Origin: Kudoa neothunni
Taxonomy: Eukaryota > Animalia > Cnidaria
NCBI GenBank assembly: GCA_964304625.1
Contig: OZ199838.1
Span: 11,557,608-11,621,607, forward strand
DNA length: 64,000 nt
Direction of reading: 5' to 3'
Below, piece by piece: positions 5,239 through 26,492 of this stretch. The notes under the pieces were generated by a model. That model had not been told where the DNA came from and did not search any database. It saw only the letters and a list, made by a program, of their open reading frames with translations. Position 1 is the stretch's first letter, and the number at the start of each line of letters is the position of its first letter. The position numbers were made by a program, and so were the translations under genes.

Positions 5239-8200
5239 ATGAAAATAGCTGGATTTCTCTACCTTGTTTTAGGTATAATATTGAGTAAATTTTAATATTA
5301 ATGCAAGTTTAGGTGTTTTAATACCAAGCTCAGCCAATGCCGCTGTAAGTCCAAATTCTCAAGCTCCAGCTCCAGCTAAACCTGCAGATGCATCTCCGAT
5401 GAAGACGCTGAAATACAAGATTGTGAAGGATACAACTGATAGCACAAACAAAATTAAAATCAATCTTGAAGGATCAGAATACCGAACTGGCCAAAAGTGT
5501 CGTATTATGCGATCCAACGAAGCAGAAATCGCAACGAATACTGGTTCAGAAGTAACAGCAGCTACGTTTGCAGACATCGACAACTGCACTCAAAATGACG
5601 GTACTGTTTCTGGTAAATGTATTGTCGATTGTGGCACCGACAGGAATACTATTAATTACAACAAGTTGTCACCAAGAACTAAATATATATACGTCTACGT
5701 CGGTACTAACACAGATGCTGTTAAAGATGATGATCAAAAATCAGGAGGAAAAGTATTCGGATATTCAATACGTAAATAAATTTAATTTAATTTAATATAA
5801 ATATTAATTTAATTTAGCATTATTGGCTAATCCACAAATTAGTGTGACTACGATCACAGAAGTTACTAATAAAAATAAGCTGAAATTCGTAGCAAAAACA
5901 TGCGCACCTGTAAATTGTCCTATTTATTATAAGGATATTAAATATGTTGACGGTACCAAAGGGAGCACTTGTATTGCCGACAACTCTAATAATATAGTTG
6001 ATTTTGATTTATTGTTACCCCATTACGAAATGAGGTGCGAAAATTATCCCGGTTTCTTTTACAATATGCCCAACCAATATATGAAAAAAAACATAGATAT
6101 TTATAAGCCCCAGTTCTATATTATTGCCAAAACTGAAGATAAAGTGGGAATTAAATTCACGAATTCTCCATCTTCTGAAATCTGTCTTTTCAGCCTTAAA
6201 GATGGTCAGGAATCAGGGACGAATCCATCATATACGTCTGTTTGTGGTGGTACTGATAAAAATTGTTATGCTCCTTGTAAGTACGTCGAACTCAATGGCC
6301 TTAGGGGTAAAAAGATTTATAAAATTTTAATCCAAACAAGGCATAACGACATAAAAATTACGTCTGGTAATTTGGATGGTTACGAACAAACTAAAATTGG
6401 TAATACAAATATTCAAGTGCATCTTTTATTATTTTCTTTAGCGATTACTGAACCAGATGGAGGATTACTGTCAGAATACACGCATCAGGGAGTGTCTTTA
6501 GATAGTACCCTATTTAAAATGGAAGCTGAACCAAAAATTGATAAATGTACCCTTAAACACTATTTTGCCGATCAAATCAAACCAGACAGTCTAACTACAA
6601 CAACATGTGATAGTTCCAGTACAGTTGGCAGCAATTGTAAAACAGATTGCTCCCAAAAATTGGTGATTCAAAATCTAATAGCGGGAAAAGCATACATGAT
6701 TGAGATCACATTTGCAAAAAGTACTACTGAGAAGAGTTTCAAAGAACATATATTGATAAGAACATGTAATTCATTATAAAAATTATAAAAATTAATGAAT
6801 TATATAGTGAAGGAAGGAAACAAAGAATATGGAGCTATTGATCCTACAAAGACAGACACGACAGTCTCTCTTACAGCTATTGCTACTGCCGCAACTTCAC
6901 CTGAAAATAAGAAAGATATACCTACCTGTGAGTATTTGGTGAGTCCGACTGGATTGGAAAGTTTTTACCATGCGAAATGCAATGGCAACACCCCTTGTAG
7001 AGGATTTTGCAGTGAACAAATTACGATAGAAGACCTTGAGCCAAACAAACCTTATGACATCAGAGTAATTGCACATCAAGATTACGCCATAAAAGATTAC
7101 AAAAATATACAAACAGGTTATTGAAGTTATAATTTACTCGTTAAATTTTTAATAGCATTAACGACATTATCGATAACACACAGGATCACCTTGGGTGGTT
7201 TGTCGTTGAAGGCCAAATTAAATGCTGTGGATCCAAATGCAATATGCAGTTATATCGTAAAAAAGAAGACTGGTAACGATTACACAGATTATTACTCATG
7301 TCCAGTGGTGCCGAAAGTAACGACACCTGTTGCCACCCCAATAGCACCAAATGCCGTTCCAGCTGTTCCCACCAAGTTAAGTTCTGCAGATCTCAACATA
7401 GTTAGAATTTCTGTACCAATGTTAGCAGATAGTGCTCTAATGTCAGCAGCGAAATCTTTAGTTCCAAATAATTCAGAAACACAGCTTGCTGATGTCGCGA
7501 ACAGCGCAAACACATGTTCTTCAAATCCCCTTTGCAGTTCCATAACATTTCCCGAGTATGAAGCAGCAAATACATACAAAATTTTAGTCACAGCTATCGG
7601 AAAATCTTCACAACAAGAGCATATCATAGAATCAAGTATTACAATTAATGCTTCAGTTAATGTCACTATTACGAATTTATTAAACGAAACTTTCATTAGG
7701 TACACCAAAAGTAAACCCAACTGACTCCTCAAAATTGATATCAGTCGTCATTACACGTGATGGGAGTAGTTTCATTGTAACCACGACATATCCAGCCAGT
7801 ATGAACGATAAATCAAAATGCAAATGGGAGTTACGTAACAGCAGTGTCAAATCTAATGCGATAGTAAAATCTTGCATGGGGAGAGGCGTTGACGGATGTA
7901 CTGCTTTTGAGACATGTAAAGAATTCAAAATAAATGGTTTAACTGATGGAAATAACTATTATTTGACTGTTTACAGTGCTCATGATAATAATATTTTCGG
8001 CGGTGCGGACATACAACAAGGTATATTCTTTGTTCACAATGTAATTTAATATTATGTATCGTAGGAGCAAAGAGTAGTTCAAGGTGAGCTTAGTAAATGC
8101 TTTTAATTAATGTAATATTTTTTAGGGATAAAACAAAACTTATGTAAATATTTTTAGATGCTGATATTTGAACTAATTGTTTTAGAATCATTATTGCATG

Positions 8201-8264
8201 CGTTGCTGTGGTTGTGGTTGTTGCGATAGTTGGAATCGTGGTATTGAAGAAAAAAAGAGATTAA
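5239..8264 (+). CDS. Gene A: type I membrane protein with tandem Cys-rich FN3-like modules (~874 aa, 10 exons)
   Basis: Exons 5239-5272, 5313-5771, 5818-6399, 6442-6765, 6808-7116, 7156-7635, 7700-8020, 8065-8083, 8126-8143 and 8186-8264 are all GT-AG and sum to 2625 nt in frame. Signal peptide MKIAGFLYLVLGVLIPSSANA. Modules end in an FN3-like L-x-P-x-x-x-Y motif (e.g. DLEPNKPYDIRV). TM IIIIACVAVVVVVAIVGIVVL followed by KKKRD*. Confidence 0.88.
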
Positions 8265-8340
8265 ATTAATTTCCGTTAACTATAGTTATTAGATAGTATT
8301 TATTAATAAAATTTTTCCATCGCGTAACATTATTTGATAC

Positions 8341-10988: not shown

Positions 10989-13900
10989 TTATAATTCGTA
11001 GACTACATCTTTGGGATGCCTTGAGTAAACCGCGATGCCGACAACCACAAAAATTGAAGCCACAATTGGTATTAGACCATAAATGCTAAAATAATTATAT
11101 AAATAACCGATAATTATATTTACATGTATGGGAAGAGGGACCTATTCAAAAGTTAAATATAGATAAGTTGATTTAAAGCTACGAGTTGATATTCTTCGCA
11201 GCTGCATGTTCTTGTTTCGGCTTACTATCTAATTTACATCGGATAATCTTATAAGATAATTAAAAATATATTACTAAATATAAATTATAGAAACATTTGA
11301 CAAACTTATTTTATATCTACCCCATTTCAACCATTTTTATAACTTTTTGAAAAATGTCATCTATATCGATGTTCTCATGTTCACTTCTTATTTGTTGTTC
11401 TTTTATTAACAATTGAGTAATTTTGTTTTTTATTTAATTACTAATAAGAATATAATATACAGAATATAATCGTAGTTATTACCCTGTTGGTTTTGGAGTC
11501 TTTGAATCTTTGTTATATATAAATATTAAAAATTGCAACATAACAAATATTTAATTTACAAGAAATTGCATAATTTTCATAATTAGAATAATCCTTCACT
11601 TTTACTGAAAATACATAATCTTTATCTTTTGACAACCCATTAATTTCAATGTCACATCCGTTGGCTGAACAGCCCTCGTCATCGTTACACCAAGTATTTG
11701 TTGATAATATTTGATCAGCAGATGTTTTCTCTTTCAATATGAATGGACATCTACTAGTCTTTTGTTTCCCATTAAAATCCACGCGAATTTTCAAATCGGT
11801 TCCGTCTTTATATTTATAACTAACAGATGTTTTTCCACTCACTAAATTCCGCTATATTCATTTAACTGCTGAATTTGTCATACCTGTGGTAATATTGTAG
11901 GTTTTAACCTTCATCCCATCTGATGGTTCCACAGTCATACTGTAGGTCTTTCCTAATTCCAGGTTAATTATTTGGAACTCACTGTCGCATTTGTTTTCGC
12001 AAATTCCCAATCTCTCACAAGTGGCCATATATGTTTTATCCGCTCCACCTTTTTTACCTAGTTTCTTGAGGTAAACTCTACAAATTGGTAAAGAGTTTTC
12101 AGTTTGAAATGGTGTGACTGTAACCGTTCTGTTAGTAATATTTGCATTATCATTGTTAACATTTAGATCGCTCCCATCGTCTAAACTGATTTAGATGTTG
12201 AGAATTTAAATTATATTTACTTGTTCTAAATATTGTTTTCTTGATGTACTTTTCACTGAAACCAAGGTTAGTAATTTCTACTGAAACTACGTAACTCGAT
12301 CCAGCCACCAAAGAACCAATGAAATAAGAAGCTTCACAATCAGTATTACAGTCAGTGCTTGGACATTTGGCTCTGGTTTCGATGGGAATGACATTGGCTT
12401 TATATATATTTATTGTACAAGCTGGAGCGGCATTAGCATCAACCTTGAATTTTTTGTAAGAATCTAGTCCAGTGAGTTTTACCCCTGAGCTTGTAATCTC
12501 AGTTAAGTTGAAGCCATTGTCATCTCCTACAAAATTTTAGCTATACGGTTGAAAAATTTGTATACTTTTGAAATATTGTTTGAATTGTTTGTTATCAACT
12601 CTTCTCCCAACGATTACACCAACTTTTTTAGATTCTTCCGTCAAACTAATAATACCATCTTGACAAAGTTGATAGCAAAAACCTTCAACATCTTTACATT
12701 TATTCAAAATAACACTTTCTTGGTCATCACCTTCATTGTTGACTTTAAATACTTTGACGTAACACATTTCATCATTGTAAGGACCAGATGAGAAACTTAT
12801 TTTTAGTTTTTTATGGTTTCTATCAACACCGCTGATGGAAAATATAATATCAGATCTCAAAGGAATAATTCTATTCAAGTATGTATTATTCATGTAATAG
12901 ATTATTCCTGGCCACATATCTGTGGAGTAAATTTTGTAATAACTCATGAATCTATCTATCGACAACGAAGCAGTTCTTGTTTCAATGTTGTCAGAATAAC
13001 TGGATAGATTTAAGCTATCTTTGAGAGACGAGCTGAAATCATCATTATTACCATCGACTTGGATTTCCCAATTTGCCACTGAGTTAGATTTATAGGAAAA
13101 ATTAATTTTGCCTTCTGTATGACTCAAACCATAAAATTGTTTATGTTTGTAATCTACCAAATAAAATTAATATTATAAAATAAATTATTTATTAAATTAT
13201 AAACAATTTTGTAATAGGAATTAATAAGTATGATTATTAATTACCCATTTTAATTGTGAAAACATTCCGTTGTTTGCATTTTTTTGCTTCTTCATCACTT
13301 GGGCCATAACAAACCAATACGTATCGATCAATTTTTGAATTGATATTTCCAATCTCAGCATTGTTAGCATCACCACCCATCAAGCAAAATTCATCATTTG
13401 TGTTCGATTTGCATGTCGGTTTTACGAAATCAGAGTTATCAAACTTTGATAATTTTAAAACACATTTAGTGTTAGCTGAAAATTGGGAAAGTGATATAGA
13501 GAAATTATCCTGCTCAGTCTTTCCTTTTGTGACGAATCCTTGATGAAGTTTCCCACGTCGGGTAAATGCTACAAATGTATTTACACATAAAATAAGATAA
13601 ATTAATTTTACCAGGAATAGCAATCTTAAATGGCTTTGATTTCTCTTCTACATAAATAGTCAGCCGATAATTAAAATTTCTGTTGTAATATATGTTCTGA
13701 AAATTAATTTCACTGCATTTTTTAATATTTGAATCATCGCTAGCACATCCAATACACGACTGCACTATTTCAGTAGGCGATGCTATATAAAATTATGATT
13801 GTAATATAATAAATGTAATTACTATTATTTCCTTTGTGCTTAGATAACTGATAATAGCAATTCTTATCGTTTGCATCGGTAATAGCGTTATTATGATTTA

Positions 13901-16900
13901 TTACGAGTAGGTTTTTCTTCGTATCATTTGAAATTTTAAATGTAATGCTCTCACCAGCTATATATTATTTATTAAATTTTAATTAATATTTGGTACCTGT
14001 TTTTTGATTATCAATAATTTTTACATTATAATTTCCATTCGGCACTATTCTGATACTATACGTGACATCGGAGTAAAGACCCTTGATAGTGAAAGAAGAG
14101 CTGCACGTTTTTACGCACAAATTATTATCTGAACATATGGCTGGAAGATAACCATTCTTAGAATCTTTTTCTTTCACGTAAATAGTGCATGTGTTTGATA
14201 CCGATGATGTAGTTGGAATGAATGTGAATCCATCTGTATTTGAAGTCACCGAGATTATTTTAGGTGAAAGGTTATTTGATTGAGCTTAGAAAGATAGAGT
14301 AAAGAATCAATTATTGTAAATAATACTTAGTTTGTGATAGAAATATTTTCTTAGCTTATAATGAGGTATGCTTGTTATGGTTGCCATGATATCATTAGGT
14401 AAATCAGCTGGTGCGGGTGGTATTTCCATATTAGAGAACGCGCAGGAGGGAGAAGAAACGTCTGACCTTCCGTTTTCACTAATCAATGGAGCATACGTAT
14501 TCCATATCTTCAACGAGCATGCAACCGGAGTGGACTCTGCAACAGATTGACCATCTTCATCCTTACTATTAGCTTCAAGGTTAATTTTGACCTTGTGCGT
14601 TTGCTCGTTAGTTTCCGCAGGAATATCATTTCCATGATTAACTAAATAAACATATTATATGAAAATATTTATATTATTACGAAAATAAATGTTGTTTTGG
14701 TAACCAATGATAGGAATCATTCCATGTTTAAGGACACGTATTTTTACTGCTTTTACGCTTGCTGGTATATTTCCGAAAGTGATTTCACTGCAGAGATTAT
14801 AAAAGCAGTTAACTCTGTTTTCACATCTGTTCGAAAAAAAATTATTTGAGGCTGAGAATGTTGCATCTATCCATTCAAAAGTGCATATTTCAGAAGGATT
14901 CTCATTGGTTAGTTTAACAGTGAGACTTCTAGGTCTTTTGCCAACAGCCAACTCGTAATAAAATCTACTGAATATAGGTGCGTGGGTTTTCACGAATGTA
15001 TTATCATAAAAATAATGGAAATCAAAATGATCAGGACAATCTATGTGATAATCCTCCGTAAGTTCACCCAACTGAACGGAATAGTGCCCAAAGGTACAAA
15101 TATTGTTACTGGTTGTTGTAGTTTCTGACGTACCGCCTTGTACTTGCGTATCCTTGTGAAATTTACACGACTGTGCACATTTGCTCGTTCCTAGTTGTAT
15201 TTTATCCCCATCTAGTTTTGCTATGTAATTAATTTCCTCGTAATCATCTTATAAAAGTTACACTTATCAATATTTATTTATATATTGTATTACCTATAAA
15301 ATAGGAAAAAACCCTCCCTATGTTGAATGTTTTTATTGTTGAAGTCGAAGTTGGAGGTAACTGACCAGGCTCCGGTGTGTCCTTCTGACCCTCCTCTCCC
15401 ATTCTTCCAGTTACAGGGGGTTGAGGAGTATTGACTGTTTCAGTATGCTTGTAAGTAACAGAAATATAATTTAATTTCCGCTGAGAATTAAGGCTAATAG
15501 CAAATTCATTTATAAGCTGATCGCACCGTTTTTTTAGTACGTCACTATTTCCATCAGCACTCTCATAACCAGACAAATCAGAGTTGGCTCTTTGCACTAT
15601 GCAATCATTATCAGATACGTTGGCCGGTTTACCTTTAAACTTAACCTTGTACCCACTAGACGATGCGTCGTATCTTAGAATCATACCATCGGTAACTTCT
15701 TTTTCGTTTACTAAAAATAATATATTGAAATCTGGCTTATAATTATAACAACTTGTTATTTCTTTCTCAACTGGTTTAGCTTTATCTTGATTTATCACAA
15801 TGATTTTATAAGGAAAACCAATGTTAAGTTCGGTCCACTGAATTTCAAACGTATTTGTCCCAGATACAGCTACAGTTTTTTGACAATTGCCATTCAAACA
15901 ATCAATAATTATTTGGTTGGATGTTTTTTCAACAAGAAAATAAGCCCATGAACTTCCTAATGACGTTTCTGATGAAGCGGTCATGCTAAACGTCGTCTTT
16001 CGACCATCAGCATCATCTACTGAAGAGACGGTGAATGCCACTTCATTAGCTATTATAAAATAAATAATTTTGCGTATCTATGATATTACTTTCTACTCCA
16101 TCACTTTCGGCACATGTATATCCCTTTGTACATAGGGTTATTTTATATGTTGTTTTTGGATCGAGGTTAATAATATTGAAAGTCTTAGTACAAATATCCG
16201 AGCAGAATTTTTTAGTTTCATTTATTTCGCAAGTAGCAGGATATTTGGAGGATAAATCCCCCACTACCGCGTAGTAAAGTTCACACTCTGAGCCTGAATG
16301 AACTCCACTTGGGAAAAGATTAGCTGGATTTAGAGTTAATTTTGTATGTGCGTTTGCAACAATTGATGGAGTAAGATTATTATTGTTAAATTTAGTTCCT
16401 ATCTTACATTTAAAAGACAATTATTTTATATGAATACCTTCGGTTTTGAAATAAAAATATCTGTGATAATATTCTACTTCAGGTGAATCTAAGGTGGTGA
16501 GTCCAGTTATTTTAATTTTTAAAACATATTCTGTTAATGGCTTAAGTTCTGTAATTGTGATTGAGTTAAAATTCTTGCATTGAATCACTGCTGTACAGGT
16601 TGGATTTACGCCATCAGTTTCAACTCCAAGATATTTTTCTACAATTTTCATTTCAGTAATTTTAGATTTACTTTCTACGTCGGCGGTGCCCTCATTTTTG
16701 TTCAAAGCGGATAAATCAATAGTGGCTTGATTATTATTATTATTGTCAAAGGTTACACTAGGCTGGGTAGTAACGACTAAACTAAACTAAAATTAAATTT
16801 TTTTAAATATATTACATGTCACGAGCTGAATAAACTCTTTTGGTGTTTGGTTTACTTGAGACACGACAATTACTTGAGCAAACTTCAAATCAGAGTCATG

Positions 16901-17836
16901 CTGGAGGGTAGCTTTGTAGCAAGGTTGTAAACATGGTCCAGCTTTTCTCATATCTGAACAATGAGACGAAAAATGAGACTCGTTTATTTCTTTTATTCCA
17001 AAGTAACAAATTTTTGATGGCTCTGGGTTTTGGAGTGTTATAGTGTAATAATACTTTCCTCTCTTATCTACTTTCGATCCAGTTGCGATAAACCAATCCT
17101 GACTAGGTTTTTCTGGATTCAGGAATATTTGAGGAGATCGGCTGGTAAACTCAACAACGGACGTAATTCGATACGAAAGGGAACTTAATTTAAGAGTTTT
17201 CGTAATAAATTTATTATCTGACGCTACATTAATTTTGGTTGTGCCATCAATAGACCTGAATTCATCATTTAATTTGCTTTTGATGGATATATTAAATTCA
17301 TTATCTTCCTTTTCTGCTTTAATATCAGTTTTTATGTAAATATCTATAATTGTTTTCAAAAGAATTATTATAAATAAAAAACACCTTTGAGTGGGTACAC
17401 TCTTTTGTTAATACACTTTTTTACCTCTGTATCGTCCTTTCCTTGACACCACCTTACAAACTTTATTTTGTCCATTTCTTTCTCATTTATAGTAAAGTCG
17501 AGTTTTTTACAGTCATGGAGACACAAATTTGAAGTTGGATCCAGGGTTGAGCTTGTCACAACAGTGGTACATGCTGTAAATGCCTTTAAGGCTGATTGAT
17601 GTCTATCATAATACTGAAATGCACATTTTCTATGACTATTCTCAATATTGTATCCAGAAATTAAAATTTTGTATCCTTCTTCATTATTTAAATAAAGTAA
17701 CTTTAATACATTGTTGTCAATATTATTTTTAATATTTTCATCAGAATATACTAAAAAATAAATAACAATCGAGATTTTAACATAAAATACCTTTAAAAAT
17801 AAAGATATATTTTATAAAAACATATGTCAGTAACAT
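10989..17836 (-). CDS. Gene B: large type I membrane protein with ~15 exon-encoded Cys-rich FN3-like modules (~1945 aa, 22 exons, two nested introns)
   Basis: Exons: 17836-17791, 17750-17385, 17343-16816, 16776-16438, 16398-16090, 16049-15753, 15710-15294, 15247-14681, 14641-14327, 14284-13997, 13957-13823, 13782-13612, 13568-13245, 13153-12566, 12526-12221, 12180-11884, 11841-11560, 11507-11484, 11399-11322, 11228-11183, 11141-11124, 11085-10989. They total 5838 nt with no internal stop seen. Signal-like N-terminus MLLTYVFIKYIFIFKVYS. TM IIYGLIPIVASIFVVVGIAVY followed by SRHPKDVVYEL*. Confidence 0.85.
11229..11321 (-). other. Predicted [D1,2] spliceosomal twin intron (gene B, second)
   Basis: ATG G | G | gtagat...ttag (11320-11274, 47 nt) | taata...ttag (11273-11229). 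This gives a new GTAATA donor, a 46-nt outer intron and an in-frame GAT AGT AAG. Confidence 0.75.
11400..11483 (-). other. Predicted [D1,2] spliceosomal twin intron (gene B, first)
   Basis: ACA G | G | gtaata...ttag (11482-11441, 42 nt) | taatt...aaag (11440-11400). Removing the inner intron creates a GTAATT donor for a 42-nt outer intron and restores the frame (GAA CAA CAA). Confidence 0.75.
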
Positions 17837-20800
17837 AACGAGTTTCTGAATGTTTTTAGTCGTTAGACGAAAAATTATACCAATTTATTACTCTAATACT
17901 CGATTGTTATCATTTAAAAGGAGAAAAATAAATCCTATTAGGTATCTTAACAATAGTTATTAAATTCATCCATATAAATAATTTCTTGATTGTATTTCTG
18001 ACAAAGAGAAAAGAAACTATATATTTTTTACTGACTTAACAAAAAAATTGGATTCCTTTAACTTAACATGAAGTAAGTTTTGGAGTTGTATTCATCTCGA
18101 AAAGGAGTCCAAGTCCTTTAATATTTTAAGATAAATATTCACCTTACTTCCAATATTTAATCCATAGCTGGTTTTCGTTGCTTTTCGGCTCTGGCATATA
18201 ACCGCCATAAAAACTTTCATTGTTTTTAAAATTTTATTTTTTTTTAATAACAATTAATGAATTCATTTCTAATTTATTACTACAGTATAATTATAGTTAA
18301 TAATGTATTTGTAAAGATATGATAATAAATAGCTCATACCATGTGCTTAGGTAATAATGCAACGAAAAATTTATGATATTAGTCTCTTTGAAGAGTATTT
18401 TTGTAAATTTAGAAAAATTATATTTAGTTATATGATATAAATTTAACTTAAGAATTACAGACTTATCTAAGATAAGTTATAACGGAAGTAATGCGAGGCC
18501 AAAAAAGCAACGAAGAACGACCAGCATGCTAAATCCTAATAATCCCACATTTGTTAATTGAGAGATGAGATATAGGAATTTAATCGACGCAGTTGATGAC
18601 ATTGATAATAACAAAATAAAACTGAATTTTCAATCCGACACCAACAAATTTATTTTTTCACTTTCTGGATACAATATTGAAAATAGTCACAGGAAATATG
18701 CTTTGCAGTATTATGATAACTTGGATTCTTCATTAAAGGCTATACCAACCTGTACCACTGATATAAAAAATGCTAAGGCTAAACTTGACGAAAATTCAAA
18801 AAAATGCATTTATGATTGCAAAAAAGTCGAAATAAAATTTGAGTATGATGCATTTAAGAAAATTAAATATTTAAGATGGTGCCTTTAAATTCGCTCAAGT
18901 ACTTGTAAAATCAGCCGTGCAATCAGCATCAAAAGAATTTATTCAGACAGTGACATGTATTCAGTTGAGCAATTTCAACTTTTTTATAATATTTTAGTTG
19001 GTAATAGTCAACTTTCTGTTACCCATACAAATAAAAATGAAGAAATAACCCTTGATTTGTCTAAGTTGAATAAAAACGAAGATAGCACTGTAACGAATGG
19101 AGGTATTATTACAGAAATCAAAATAATGGAAAAACATTCGAGGATCGAAAGCTTTGGAGAAGATGCAAAATGTAATGGTGAATGCAAAGAATTCAAATTG
19201 GAAACTATAATGGAACTTACACCGTTAACTGAATACATTCTAAAAATTGAAATAACAGGATTAACAACATTAGATTCACCTGAAGTGAAACATTATCATC
19301 GATATTTTTATTTCAAAACCAAAGGTAATTTGATGCTTAAAGATTCGTTTAAATATTTAATTAGGGAATGAATTTCAAAATGGAAAAGAAATCATAACAT
19401 CGACCACTACCGTAAAACATACATAGTTATCCCAGACTGTCGCCGATCTCTTTGCAACCGGATCTAATAGTGGTGCCATATGTGAACTGTACTACTTTGA
19501 AGATGTAACTAACCCCTCAAAGTTCCCAGCTACATGCGAAAAAGAAGATGAAAAAGCATTTTGTTCTGATATTTGTGCTGGTCCATTTAAAATTGTAAAT
19601 CTTAACCCAAAAACGAACTACAAAATTACCGTTTGCTCCAAAGGTTATACTTGTGCTAATACCTCTCAGATTACTAGTATTTTATATTATAATAATAAAA
19701 CAATTATTTTAAATAGCTAATGGAATCATTGTAAGTGTAAAAAAGTCAGATGATGTTAACGTACAGAAAGTGACTGTCACCATGTCCACTTCTTCAAGCG
19801 GAAGCCTTGGAAGTTCCTGGAATTTTATGATGATAGAAAAGGAATCTTTGGAAACGATAGTTGATTGTTTGAACAACGATTGTTCTTCCATTGTAACCTC
19901 AAATACTATTAATTTTCAACGGGAAACTCTTGCTGTTGATATTGCTTATGAAATAATTGTAATTAATAAAGATTATGCATTGCCAACGAAAATTGAAATA
20001 TTAAGTAATTAATTTAAAGAATAATATATCTAATTATTTTAGGAGGATCAATTGAGAGTGATCAAAATATGACCGTACGATTTTATTCAAAAGAACAAAC
20101 GTATAAAGTGAAATTCAAAAGTGATTTATTCTCCGACAATGTTAAACAATGTACAGTTAGATTATCCAATGATAAACTCACTAATTATGTGGGTGTCAAA
20201 AGTGAGACGGTTGTTCAAAAAAATTGCAATGAACTTGTTGGAGAATATCCTATTGATCATAATAATCAAAATAAGCGACATTATGTTTCTGTCACTTAGT
20301 CAGAAATTAAAAAATTTGATCCTTTTGAATCATGGGAGGCTGCAATATATACTGTTAAGGCAATTATCGACAAAATTTTTAGTAGTGTTTTTAACGATAT
20401 TGCCAATAAATCTGCTCAAAAGTCGCAACCAACTAAAACAGAAGCAGGTTCAAAATCAAAACGAACCACCTTCACTGTAGGGAGGGTATTTTCGTACTTC
20501 ATAGGTAACATTAATTGTGATAATTACTTTAACTTGTTTAAGATCATTATGAGGAGATAACGCATACGGCAACATTGTATGAAGACAAAATCAAATTTTC
20601 CGTAAACAAGTGTCCATTAAGCTGCAATGAATACATGGATGAAAAAAGCATAGGTTCTTTCACCGTAGTTCAATCTGGAAACGATTGTAACCCTGGCAGT
20701 GGCACTATTCAATTTGGCGAACTAGTTAGAGACTACTACCTAAGTTGTCAAAAATATTTCGACCTCCACTATTTCTATGAAAATTCTTTTATTAAAAATA

Positions 20801-23800
20801 ATGCACCCGTCTTTAGCAGATATTACTACGAATTAGCGATAAATGATGTAAATAGTAAACTCACCATCAAATTGGTTAACGAAGAACCTTCCGAAATATG
20901 CACCTTCGAATGGATTGACGCAACTAGCTCATCACCTAATAGATTTTTCTCAAACACTTGCGAGAATAATTTTAACTGTCTTTTCAGTTTATGCAGTAAT
21001 GTTACGTTTGGAAATATTCCAACACGTGTAAAGGCAGTAAAAATACGCGTTCTCAAATTAGGAATGGCACCTACTGTTGGCTACCAAAACAACATTTATA
21101 TATGTAATAGTTTTATTAATGTATAATATTAATAAATATTTAAGTAAAACATGGGAATGATTTTTCTGTGACTAGCTCCGAAGATAGTAAAATAAAAATT
21201 AACATTGTTACTAACAACAAAGATGAAGATGGTGCAGCAGTAATCGGCGATTCTACCGCAGATTGCGAATTGAAGATCTGGAATGCGTATGCTCCATTAG
21301 TCAGTGAAACAGGGAGGAACGCATCTACCAATTCAACTGGATGTATTTTTGGAGAAATAAACGTTACACCAAATCCAACTGATTTGCCAAACGATGTTAT
21401 GGTAACAATAACAAATATACCTACCCAATTATTCACCTAGAAAATACTTTTACCATAAAATAAGTAATTCTTCATAATTTTAAATTGTATAATAAATAAT
21501 TTAGCTCAATCAAATTCTCTTACTACTGAAGAGATTTCAATTAATACAATTGCAGATGGATTCACACTTACTCTAAAGTCTGAATTAGGAAAAATTTGCA
21601 AAATTTACATAAAAGAGAATACTACGCCTTATTATCATCCTGCTATATGCTCGCAAAATAAATTATGCGTGGATAAATGCGACACGCGATTTAGCATCAT
21701 TGGGTTGCATTCGGATACGAATTACGATATAAAAATCGTACCTAGTGGAAACTATGCGATTAAAATCATCGAAAATAAGAAAACAAGTAAAAAGCTTCAT
21801 TTATCGCTAATTAAATTTTAAATAGCTGGAACTACAATTGAATTCCATATTTCAACACAATCAACAAAAAACAACTTAATAATAACACCAATACAAACAA
21901 TTAGTGATGGTAGTACTACTAATTGTTATTATCAATTATATGTACACGGAAAAGAAGACAGTAATAAAAATAATTTTACTTTTGTAATTTATATTTAGTC
22001 GCACCAACACGTATACAACAGTCTTGCGTCGAATGCGATAAGGGAACAAATAATGATCATAATATCAATAACAAAAAGTGCGACAATATTCGGTTTGATC
22101 ATACATTCTATAACAACAGGTATAATTACAGATTATTGATTTATGTAGAGGGAAAATCTTCATTGTTTAAAATCGCGATTCCGGGTAAAATTAGTCTAAT
22201 TTTTTATGTAATATTTTGTTAGCTTTTTCTCGAACTGGGAAACTTACACAAAAATTTATACAACGAAATCAAGATAAAATTGAAAAGCTATTTATTTTGT
22301 TATCAGATTTTCCAAATAATAATAGATGTGCTGTAAAAATATCAAATTTGGAGGAGAGTCCTGAATTAATTAAACCATCATGTGCTTCAAAGGATGACAA
22401 AAATTTTGTCTGGTGGCATGTACAGAAACAAACGTTGATATAGGGTATGTTAATTCTAAAATTGATCGATACATATCAATTTGTTATGGAATAACTGATG
22501 AAGACGCGAAAACCTGCAAAACGGCTAGAGTTTTCTTGACAAAAATGGGTAAGTCTATAATTATTATTATTATAAGTGATTTTTTAATCGTTAATCTTAA
22601 AAAATTAAAATCATTATTTTCTAAGACAGTTGATGTAATTATAGAGCTTTTTCAATTAATTTTTAGGATCTACTCAAAAAAACACTTACATAATAAATCA
22701 TGGTGACGGCGAAACAAAGTTTACTTACAAACCAATATCGATAAATAATTGGATGGTGTATGTCGATGAAAAAATTGATTCAGTTACCAACATTGAAAAA
22801 GATAAGTTAAATATAGCAAGTTACTCAACTGAAATAGAAGATAAGATCGCAACTTTCTCGGTCGATAGATATATGAGTTATTATAAAGTTAACTCAACAC
22901 TTATGTGGCCTGGAATATTCTATTTCATAAATACCACCATACTGAATAGCATTATTCCTCTAAAATCAGAGGTTATATTTTCTATAACGGCTGTTGCAAA
23001 TAGGAATAATCAAATTAAAATTAAATTCTCCCCCGGCCCGTATAACGATGAAATGTGTTGTATAAAAATATTCAAGGTGGATGATAGCGGTAAGGATCAA
23101 TTAAAAATTTTTTTGAATGTGTGCGATAACCCTGAGGAAGGATGTTACCAACTTTGTCAAGATGTAATTATTAATTTGAAAAAAGATTATCAAAAAATTG
23201 GCGTAATTGTTAAACGAAGATTTGATTCTGATGGATTTAAACAATATTTTAAAAATAATATTAAATTTTTTTCAAATTTAATTTTTCATAGGAGGAGACA
23301 AAAACTTCGATTTGCGTGAAATCACCGATTCTGGAGTTACACTTATTGGTCTAAACAACTACAACAGTATTAAACAAGGAGAAAATGAACAAACGTGCAC
23401 CATTAATATACGCAGATCCAACACTATATCTGCTGAAACAACAGCTCGATGCAGCAATGGTGATTGTGACTTTAAATGTAGTAGTTCGTATTCGATCATT
23501 GGTCTTGCTGCTGGGACAAATTATATAATTTCAGTAACAATTACAAGCCTTGGTTTTGTTGGATCTTATGTCAGAAAAGTTTCTTTTAGAACAAGTAAAA
23601 TTTTATTACAATCCTCATAACTTATACATAATATCTAGCTGGTGGAACTGACTCGGTTGCATCAGAAGCTTCAGATTTAGCGATTAAAGCAGGCAACGCT
23701 ACTTTGACACCCTTTCAAGCAGATAATTTACTTCCAATATGCAGAATTTACCTTAAAAGAAAGGATGAAACGTCTCCAAAATTTATGGCTACATGCGACG

Positions 23801-24326
23801 GAATTGGAGCTTGTGAAAATAGATGCGGCAGTTCGTTTAAAATAGTAAACCTTGAATTGGGTGTTACTTACGAAATAATTGTGGAACCATCATATGGAAT
23901 AAAGGAAAAAAAATTTGATATTACAACAGGTGAGAAATATTTTCTCACCTTATAATAAATGAGTTAATAGCTAACGTCAAAACAAATGTTGCGATAACAT
24001 ACGACAAAGAAAGTGATATAAAAATTAAAGTAAACTCTGATAATAAAGAAGGTACCTCAAAATGCCCATTCATGCTACATGAGAAAACTGATGCAAACAA
24101 ACCGGAGCCCATAGTTGTATGGTGTAGTGACGAGGAGGATTGTTCAGCCAATGGGTGTATTATCAGTCTCAATAAGTTATCGAAGGAAAAGAATTATAAA
24201 CTAAGAGTGAAAGTGAAGGATTTATCAACCTATAATATTCACGAGATTCCATGTAAATTAAAATCCTAAAATGTAATAACTTAAATACTTTTTACGATAA
24301 AGACTTGAAAATTTCAAAGTTGCAAG

Positions 24327-24412
24327 GGTAATATTAATAGAATTAAATGTGTATTTAATGCTATTTTTTAGTAAATTTTATATTCACACTGATGTATTAT
24401 GAATATTTATAG
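24327..24412 (+). other. Predicted [D1,2] twin intron (gene C, first)
   Basis: CAA G | G | gtaata...ttag (24328-24371, 44 nt) | taaat...atag. New donor GTAAAT and a 42-nt outer intron. Confidence 0.72.
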
Positions 24413-24493
24413 AAGAGCATAACATAAGGAGCGAATATACCAATATTGAGGTGTACGATGACGTTCAAAAATTAATTAGGAAAGTTGAAAGGG

Positions 24494-24580
24494 GGTGATC
24501 ATATCTTTATCACTTCTTATACTCACATTTGTTTTAGTATATTTTTATATTAAACCAATTAACACCAAAGAAACATGTAG
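24494..24580 (+). other. Predicted [D1,2] twin intron (gene C, second)
   Basis: AGG G | G | gtgatc...ttag (24495-24537, 43 nt) | tatat...gtag. New donor GTATAT and a 44-nt outer intron. Confidence 0.72.
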
Positions 24581-26492
24581 ATAGCAAAGAAAATCATGAC
24601 GAAAAAGTTGCAAGAAATGTTGCTTCGTAAATTTAAATAAATATTTCTCATTGTTAATTCTTTTTAGATCGGTTGGAAGATATATGTAAAGTAGAATTCG
24701 ATGCTTTGTGATTTATTTATTTTAGTGCATACGCAATGATTCCAATTGTGGCTGGATTACTGGTAGTGCTAGGATTGATAGTTTACAGAAGAAACTCCAG
24801 CGACGATACCTACGAGTTGTAAGCACATCGACCTAACCGTAGATTAATTTATTATTATTATTATTCAAAAGATATGTTATTATTTATTATTTTTTTATTT
24901 GATTTGGTTACTATATATTTTATCATGCCAGTGCAATCTATTTCATGAGATGTACGCAACAATAATGACGAGAAATCTTCATCAAATCATTTCACGTTGA
25001 ATTCATTTTTATACCGTCGCGACGGTTATTTGAATATGTTCAGGGAAATTTTATTCATTAATTAACCATATCTGATATACCTATTTATATTTAAACATCA
25101 AATTAAAGTTCCATATGTTTGACAATTTTCATTTGAATGATTAATGAATGAATAATATGTGCAATTGGATTTATTTAGATTTTTATGAATAACATATATG
25201 TTTTAAATAATATTTATAATTTATAGATTTTTAGGATTTTAGGATTTTATTGTGGTCAGTGGCTATTAACATATTAGCGTATAATCTAATGTTGTCGGGG
25301 CTGTTTATTGCCACGAAAACGAATTTCTCCTAATTCTGATGATGTTCAGACTTATAATTTTAGTTATTATTTTTCCATACTAATTTCTAATAAATTTTAA
25401 ATTTTCGCGTTAAAATATACGATATAGATTTTACGATAAAAATCAACCTTCTTTGCCGGCTTTACGACAATTAGTGGCTAAAAATCTAAAGTATAGGTTT
25501 ATTTATACTTACAAAGCGATTTTTGAAATAATTTCTGTTGTTATATTATCTTAATTAAGTATTTTCAGGCAGTTTTGAGTCCTATTTTGATGATCTATCC
25601 TCAAATCGACCCAACTAAATCAGATCCATTGTAAGTACACAGCCTATATATACAATTCATACTATTTAAAAGATATTTAATATCTCAATTTTTAGTTTAA
25701 CTTTCTGAGAATGCCAAACAGCCTATATACCAAACGTTTTTTGGGTCCAATAGATCCCAAGTGGATTTAATTTCACCTAAACTCCTAGCTGGAGTCATCA
25801 TTTGCGTTTAAATTTTTGTATTTACATATTGTCTATTTAACTGTTTTTCGACAATAGGTGGATTTAAAAAATCTTTTACCCGTGAACATGGCAGTTCAAA
25901 TCTGTTAGGCATGGAGTTATGTAGCAGCAGCTTTTATGATAATTTATTGGTAGGTAAAAACGTGAAGAATCCAATTCCGAATATTTAAAATAAAAATTAA
26001 GATGATTTATATGACATATGGCTCAAAACGAAAAATTTTTACGTTCAAGGATGAGAGGCTTTGTGGTAAAAATTTCGGATGGTCTGTTTACTCCGTAAAA
26101 TTATTTTATAAAAAGAGCAAATAGGATATTAACAATAATAAATACAAAACCGATATTTCTGATAATGTTTTACAGAAAATGACACTTTAAGATAATTTTA
26201 CACGGAAAAATTATTATAATTAAACATTATAATTAGCTATACAAATAATTCCTGTAAAATAACTTTAAATTTTAAAATTCCGTTATTTTATTAAATTCAA
26301 TGTATCATGGGCCAATAATAAAGTTACAATACCAAAAAACTCCCAGAAATTATTCCATTCTACAGATGGAGGAATGGATACAGTTAGTTGAATTTTTGTT
26401 AATTATTTACTTATCGAACAATGAAAAGATGATCGGCCGCTACGTTCCACATTTTGTTAGATATAATGTCAATAAATGCACATGTGTTATAC

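Follow-up and report, generated by a model that had tools for sequence, protein, structure and literature searches.

Genes B and C of the myxozoan Kudoa neothunni are interrupted at the same two positions in the tail that joins their ectodomain to their membrane anchor, and at each position a single extra G stands directly before the first visible GT. The question raised by gene C is what kind of intron such an arrangement represents, how old it is and whether it has been kept by selection. Read together, reading frame, conservation and splice signals suggest that the interruptions at 24327-24412 and 24494-24580 are probably C's inherited copies of two consecutive spliceosomal twin introns (stwintrons) of the [D1,2] type, which characterise the juxtamembrane tail of the family. 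In each of them the donor of one mini-intron, of about 43 nt, would be split between its G and its T by another, ordinary mini-intron of about 44 nt. In intact family members the inner GT..AG intron would be taken out first, the upstream G would then join TAAAT or TATAT and so make a normal GTAAAT donor, and the outer intron would be excised next; both steps would be needed at both sites to carry the frame from the ectodomain through exons E1-E4 into the transmembrane (TM) exon. From the geometry, the conservation and the frame logic, all of which can be read in the DNA, we infer the order of the two steps and their occurrence in RNA.

The locus and its gene family

The window, that is the whole stretch of 64,000 nucleotides analysed here (G000:C1:11557608-11621607), belongs to a 40.3-Mb assembly of four contigs and consists of AT-rich eukaryotic DNA with about 30% G+C. 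The published assembly of K. neothunni, derived from yellowfin tuna data, comprises three chromosomes and a mitochondrial genome, has 30.4% G+C and an intron length of 49 bp, and is supported by almost no RNA reads (PMC12239612).

Genes B (minus strand, from 17559 to a stop at 10989) and C (plus strand, from 18565 to a stop at 24822) lie head-to-head and are multi-exonic, and their products are large cysteine-rich, FN3-like type I membrane proteins; five exons of genes of this family were without a match in Pfam. Both are members of a surface-protein family that numbers about 65 in this genome. The last ectodomain exon of C (23971-24252, plus strand) has an open frame, ends in phase 1 at the donor T/GTAAAT and is 50% identical to the counterpart in B (11552-11833). 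It has 67 matches in its own genome, and the loci matching it, each taken with 900 nt of downstream sequence, constitute the family set (L001-L064), in which C is 42-88% identical to the other copies over this exon. The anchors given by E2, E3 and the TM exon were located in 62 of 66 sequences. As many of the 64 copies arose by recent duplication, the number of independent lineages is nearer 8-15. A more distant member of the family, gene A (5399-8265), lies upstream and reaches its TM exon via three ordinary mini-introns of about 43-45 nt (8010-8265, plus strand) with mini-exons of 19 nt and 18 nt; it is devoid of the E1-E3 segment and of both twin structures.

Layout of the juxtamembrane tail

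In C, all on the plus strand, the last ectodomain exon is followed by an ordinary intron of 50 nt (intron A, 24253-24302, GTAAATT..ATAAAG), the family homologue of which measures 38-76 nt, and by the mini-exon E1 (24303-24326; ..YLKISKLQ, ending in ..caaG), which has a length of 24 nt, shared by 54 of 55 copies and by a second species. The first twin intron then opens with the G at 24327, the would-be nucleotide 1 of the outer donor, which is a G in every layout-bearing copy and an A only in the truncated pseudogene L001. It is followed by the inner intron of 44 nt (24328-24371, GTAATA..TTTTTTAG; 39-50 nt in the family), with a donor score of 5.5 and a central acceptor score of 3.0, and by the remainder of the outer intron (24372-24412, TAAATT..TTATAG), which amounts to 42 nt if the G is included; with the G put in front, TAAATT becomes GTAAATT, the consensus of ordinary donors. 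Exon E2 (24413-24493, EHNIRSEYTNIEVYDDVQKLIRKVER) measures 81 nt in C as in the second species, and 75, 78 or 81 nt in the family. The second twin intron is composed of the G of the outer donor at 24494, at which a contig from the DNA run X1 agrees, an inner intron of 43 nt (24495-24537, GTGATC..TGTTTTAG) with a weak donor (GTGATC, score 3.3), and the remainder of the outer intron (24538-24580, TATATT..CATGTAG; 44 nt with the G). The tail ends with exon E3 (24581-24626, DSKENHDEKVARNVAS), 46 nt long in C and in most copies, an ordinary intron of 41 nt (24627-24667), exon E4 (24668-24685), of 18 nt in 58 copies, a further ordinary intron of 40 nt (24686-24725) and the TM exon with the stop (24726-24822, AYAMIPIVAGLLVVLGLIVYRRNSSDDTYEL, TAA at 24820-24822).

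Gene B carries its first twin intron at 11400-11483 (42+42 nt) and its second at 11229-11321 (47+46 nt), both on the minus strand, and in B and C alike the first structure comes after the 24-nt mini-exon, and the exon that precedes the second ends in ..VE(R/M). The observation of the earlier note that the layout exon/G/GT..AG/T..AG/exon recurs in C at B's two positions is thereby reproduced, the half-lengths (44+42 and 43+44) being exact, and at both sites of C a GT..AG intron is flanked directly by the G(1) and the T(2) of an external donor, which is the [D1,2] geometry. The intron interiors of B and C are indeed unalignable, as was also noted earlier: each half of C compared with that of B gives z = -0.7 to 1.3 relative to shuffles.

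Reading frame of the tail

Exon frames were fixed without recourse to any splice model, and exons were joined in scripts for the frame checks. The frame of the model is the sole one open in all copies (55/55 for E1, 55/55 for E2 and 54/54 for E3), and the non-model frames of E1-E3 are closed in 19 to 55 copies, those of E1 in 36 and 19. Given these frames, cutting out a plain intron that starts at the visible GT and ends with the terminal AG misses the correct frame by one base, in every copy and at either site; dropping the extra G too restores it. Under the twin model, 52 of the 54 fully parsed copies are open from E1 to a stop just past the TM segment, over 84-96 codons. Skipping of E1 was considered and rejected, as it would create a TAA at the junction in C and B.

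Two consecutive excisions are the only frame solution that holds family-wide. The argument that nesting alone keeps the frame is nevertheless incomplete: for their second intron C and B have a canonical in-frame GT..AG alternative with a good acceptor, and for their first a poor one.

Conservation among paralogues and in a second species

Among the 64 copies with anchor exons, the layout was found at the first site in 58 by script and in a further 4 by eye, and at the second site in 59 by script and in 3 by eye. The exceptions to layout or frame are the truncated copies L001 and L008 and four copies with other frame defects (L032, L049, L062 and L063). A family-wide check of the GG-GT, the central AG-T and the half-lengths, as proposed in the earlier note, thus yields a layout common to about 62 of the 64 copies. 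The twin-intron halves of 36-54 nt agree in size with the ordinary introns of the tail (36-44 nt) and with the published K. neothunni intron length of 49 bp. The presence of the structure at both positions in about 62 of 64 other copies and on a contig of a second species upholds the view that it is older than the B/C duplication. The TM exon has 58 genomic matches, all of them within family loci, and hence no member with a resolved tail is found.

The second species was reached through a profile search of 1.84 billion representative proteins, in which P0005, an exon-level open reading frame on a genomic contig, was the sole true relative. It led to L065, a contig of 3.1 kb from the genomic DNA of another organism (SRR33849685, Logan assembly), the tail of which consists of an E1 of 24 nt, a twin intron of 39+36 nt, an E2 of 81 nt, a second twin intron of 37+37 nt, a mini-exon of the 18-nt class and a TM exon. 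At its acceptors L065 has TTTCAG/AACAG where the genome of the window uses TTTTAG, and its tail has no recognisable residues in common with that of C, so that exon lengths and layout alone match. A word search of protein collections with C's last ectodomain exon gave no match, P0005 as a query matched itself only, and a scan of metagenome contigs returned no match; taken together, the protein and contig collections gave no spliced relative of the family tail when queried with single exons. Three raw-read metatranscriptome runs with the same organism label (X5-X7) place 0 reads on 19100-24900 and hence constitute no test of splicing.

Splice signals and chance expectation

Splice sites were scored with weight matrices restricted to intron positions, for which 175 ordinary introns from these loci served as the basis, earlier matrices with exon flanks having been discarded as biased by family-specific exon sequence. 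Lineages were defined by a greedy choice of mutually unalignable introns, which retained eight (C, B, L010, L012, L026, L045, L060 and the second species); single-linkage clustering of the introns was rejected, as everything merged (null identity 0.60).

In these eight unalignable lineages the central motif consists of a T-rich stretch and AG, followed by T, A and A or T (for example TTTTAG/TAAATT), with the T and the A invariant in 16/16 cases. The donor medians of the inner and the rebuilt outer intron are 7.3 and 7.3 at the first site and 6.5 and 6.2 at the second, compared to 7.1 for ordinary introns and 2.9 for all GT; the rebuilt donors, G+TAAATT at the first site and G+TATATT at the second, match the consensus of the organism. 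The central acceptors have medians of 5.0 and 5.8, compared to 6.6 for ordinary introns and 3.0 for all AG. From these donor and acceptor scores, the centre corresponds to an ordinary acceptor consensus followed by a donor consensus minus its G. At the terminal acceptor of the outer intron the AG is present and conserved in position, with a median score of 3.5 that is near background (6.6 for ordinary introns, 3.0 for all AG).

When the interiors of the four introns of B and C were shuffled, a central AG/T as good as the observed one arose in 0.9-3.3% of cases per intron, and this AG/T recurs in the eight mutually unalignable lineages. A loose weight-matrix scan for the layout gives about 17 matches per shuffled 64-kb window. 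The layout alone is consequently not rare, and the case rests on its conservation and on the reading frame. The strict motif GGTAA..TTTTAGTAAAT..TAG has 16 genomic matches, 15 of which are in family loci, and the reversed control has 6. The sole strict-motif match outside the family (G000:C3:2222979-2223068, minus strand) could be due to chance, given the size of that control.

Neither the inner and outer introns nor the first and second sites are similar to each other (z -1.3 to 1.6), and an origin by tandem duplication or a spread as sister elements was rejected on account of this lack of sequence similarity between halves or sites. No hairpin or internal symmetry was found in the twin introns (folding z 0.7 to -1.9). 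Introner-like or sister stwintron elements were likewise rejected, as there is no copy similarity at unrelated positions and all but one of the strict-motif matches fall in family loci.

Alternative readings of the interruptions

It is extremely improbable that the extra G's are assembly or homopolymer errors in introns that are otherwise plain. Both sites do lie in G runs (GGG and GGGGG), and the first site of C is without an independent read contig, the region of the first structure (24257-24355) being covered in X1 only by a contig of about 92% similarity that comes from a truncated sister copy of C; this sister copy is also the source of a G>A at 24327 in X1. Against such errors, about 60 copies and the contig of another species carry this G at both sites, and the X1 contig shows no difference from the window over 24432-24900, so that the G run of the second structure stands. 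A homopolymer error, which the earlier note had judged unlikely, is excluded on these grounds.

Each interruption may also be viewed as a long intron of the ordinary kind that is spliced out at once, with the visible GT as its donor and an AG other than the terminal one of the twin model as its acceptor; the central TTTTAG/TA would then be an alternative 3' site or a sequence devoid of function. For the second intron of C this would imply an intron of 90 nt (24495-24584, plus strand, GT..ATAG) with an acceptor score of 5.5, the excision of which is in frame and turns D-S into G. This (+1,+4) alternative, made available by a serine codon AGC/AGT, can be drawn in C and B and in 35 of 59 copies. 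Its acceptor, with a median score of 5.8, resembles that of an ordinary intron and exceeds the 3.5 of the terminal acceptor in the twin model. At the first site a (+1,+16) alternative (24328-24428), which drops EHNIR, is in frame and occurs in 38 of 58 copies, with an acceptor score of just 0.5. The one-step alternatives in C and B are in frame and stop-free, and length is no bar to removal in one step, as ordinary introns of 91 nt (B, 13154-13244, minus strand) and 118 nt (C, 22549-22666, plus strand) exist in the same genes. However, 24 of 59 copies have no +4 AG (Ser replaced by Asn, Gly or Thr) and 20 of 58 no +16 AG, yet the tails of these copies are intact, and the +16 and +13 acceptors are poor (0.5-0.7). 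One-step removal also gives no reason for the T-A that never varies behind the central AG, for the conservation of the AG with which the outer intron ends in the twin model, or for the protein-like conservation of E(H/Q)(N/Q)(I/V/L)(R/K). As no single one-step alternative holds family-wide, the +4 AG being lost in 24 copies, the twin reading is still favoured, and we regard one-step removal as unlikely.

A role of the layout as a switch seems doubtful at best. Under this idea, transcripts that have lost just the inner intron, or neither of the two introns, would encode a truncated, secreted ectodomain, and those that have undergone both steps the membrane-anchored form. This would fit the geometry, and retention or half-splicing does meet stops within a few codons, but stops are expected by chance in an AT-rich intron anyway.

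Gene C as a decayed copy

C is a pseudogene, with four private lesions upstream of the tail, all on the plus strand, that are absent from B and from the sister copy. These are the junction of a deletion of about 556 nt with its two sides in different frames (18875-18883), the segment being present in B (16900-17359) and in the sister L066; an in-frame TAG (19424-19426) where B has AAA and the sister CAA; a frameshifting tandem duplication of 4 nt (TACCTACC, TACC TACC, at about 21421-21428) at which B and the sister remain in frame; and a frameshifting deletion of 1 nt in an A5T4 run (at about 22399-22407). Over 19300-20559, 21073-21451 and 21441-22713 the window is matched without a difference by contigs of X1, a run that may itself have gone into the assembly. 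No stop interrupts C in its last five ectodomain exons or in its tail.

The sister copy of C, with 80% nucleotide identity, is situated on contig 3 (L066, G000:C3:10141000-10150500, minus strand; also L001) and keeps the module of about 556 nt that is lost from C. It is a pseudogene that decayed independently of C: its last ectodomain exon contains a TGA, E1 has one A too many, the extra G shows G>A, and everything between the middle of the first outer intron and a point past the stop is deleted.

The four upstream lesions imply that the twin structure in C is inherited and not currently kept by selection. The suggestion that the structure was maintained by selection thus needs to be divided: past purifying selection is shown by splice signals that were kept while the interiors turned random, whereas C itself has decayed and is under no present selection. 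The layout in C arose before B and C separated and spent most of the time since then under constraint, and what C now carries is a well-preserved relic. The main caution is accordingly that C documents the inheritance of the layout and not present selection on it.

Comparison with known nested and stepwise introns

In the fungal [D1,2] stwintrons of Aspergillus, Hypoxylaceae and Xylariaceae, nucleotides 1 and 2 of the external donor are separated by a U2-type internal intron, the removal of which rebuilds a canonical GT donor, the open reading frame is restored only by two consecutive splicing reactions, and the splicing intermediate has been demonstrated by RT-PCR (PMC5639578, PMC9024468, PMC12403724). 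The Kudoa structures resemble these in the donor split between nucleotides 1 and 2, in the GT donor that would be rebuilt and in a frame that two excisions would restore. They differ in belonging to an animal, a myxozoan cnidarian, and in standing in series, 81 nt apart in one tail. The fungal stwintrons also include sequence-similar 'sister' copies, whereas those of Kudoa have been inherited with a family of about 65 members; and while the propagating fungal elements show sequence similarity or symmetry, the Kudoa halves have no mutual similarity and neither symmetry nor hairpin. The papers found to use the term stwintron deal with fungi or mention it in passing, and fungi are the only organisms in which [D1,2] stwintrons have been described and demonstrated by experiment. 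The present structures may well be the first of this type outside fungi, arranged as a serial pair in a gene family of an animal, conserved among about 60 paralogues as well as between two myxozoan species, and would be obligatory for the attachment of the TM anchor.

A related fungal case is DHA1 of Trichoderma reesei, an alternatively spliced [D1,2]/[A2,3] stwintron (PMC5587772), which is like the Kudoa structures in having two candidate introns that overlap by one shared G. The [A2,3] route of DHA1 needs a G after the terminal AG, where Kudoa has an A in 7 of 8 lineages at both sites. With an A at this place the [A2,3] route is closed, and the donor-first route alone keeps the frame.

Recursive splicing at zero-length exons, as in the long introns of Drosophila and vertebrates, is a stepwise process in which the first ligation regenerates a 5' splice site; the recursive sites read AG/GT and leave the upstream exon intact, and the introns measure tens of kilobases. 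It shares with the proposed mechanism the stepwise removal and the regenerated 5' splice site. In Kudoa, by contrast, the donor G precedes the first GT, the introns are of about 45 nt and the centre reads AG/TA. As AG/TA and not AG/GT is found in 16/16 lineage-by-site cases, the sites are not classical recursive sites.

If removal in two steps is real, stwintrons would not be a fungal peculiarity: a compact animal genome whose introns measure about 45 nt could also give rise to them and retain them over long periods. The family would then offer a second independent system for the origin of nested introns, with no sign of repeat-like spread or tandem duplication, and ordered two-step splicing would be a potential gate between an anchored and a truncated protein. 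Standard gene predictors cannot model such introns, and every member of this large family would as a consequence be truncated before the membrane anchor or given a frameshifted tail.

Further observations on genes B and C

The ordinary introns of 118 nt in C and 91 nt in B named above are homologous to each other, both start with ATGG/GTAA and neither has a central AG/T; the usual length is 36-66 nt. C has a clear intron of 38 nt at 20005-20042 (plus strand, GTAATT..ATTTTAG), and B has an in-frame open stretch of 42 nt at 15700-15745 (minus strand, GTTGTT..TTTTTAG), which may be a retained or exonised intron, or else an unannotated one. Finally, nearly all family tails carry Y-(E/D)-L directly before the stop (window position 24819 in C), after a basic or acidic stretch, and this terminal motif may serve as a C-terminal sorting signal.
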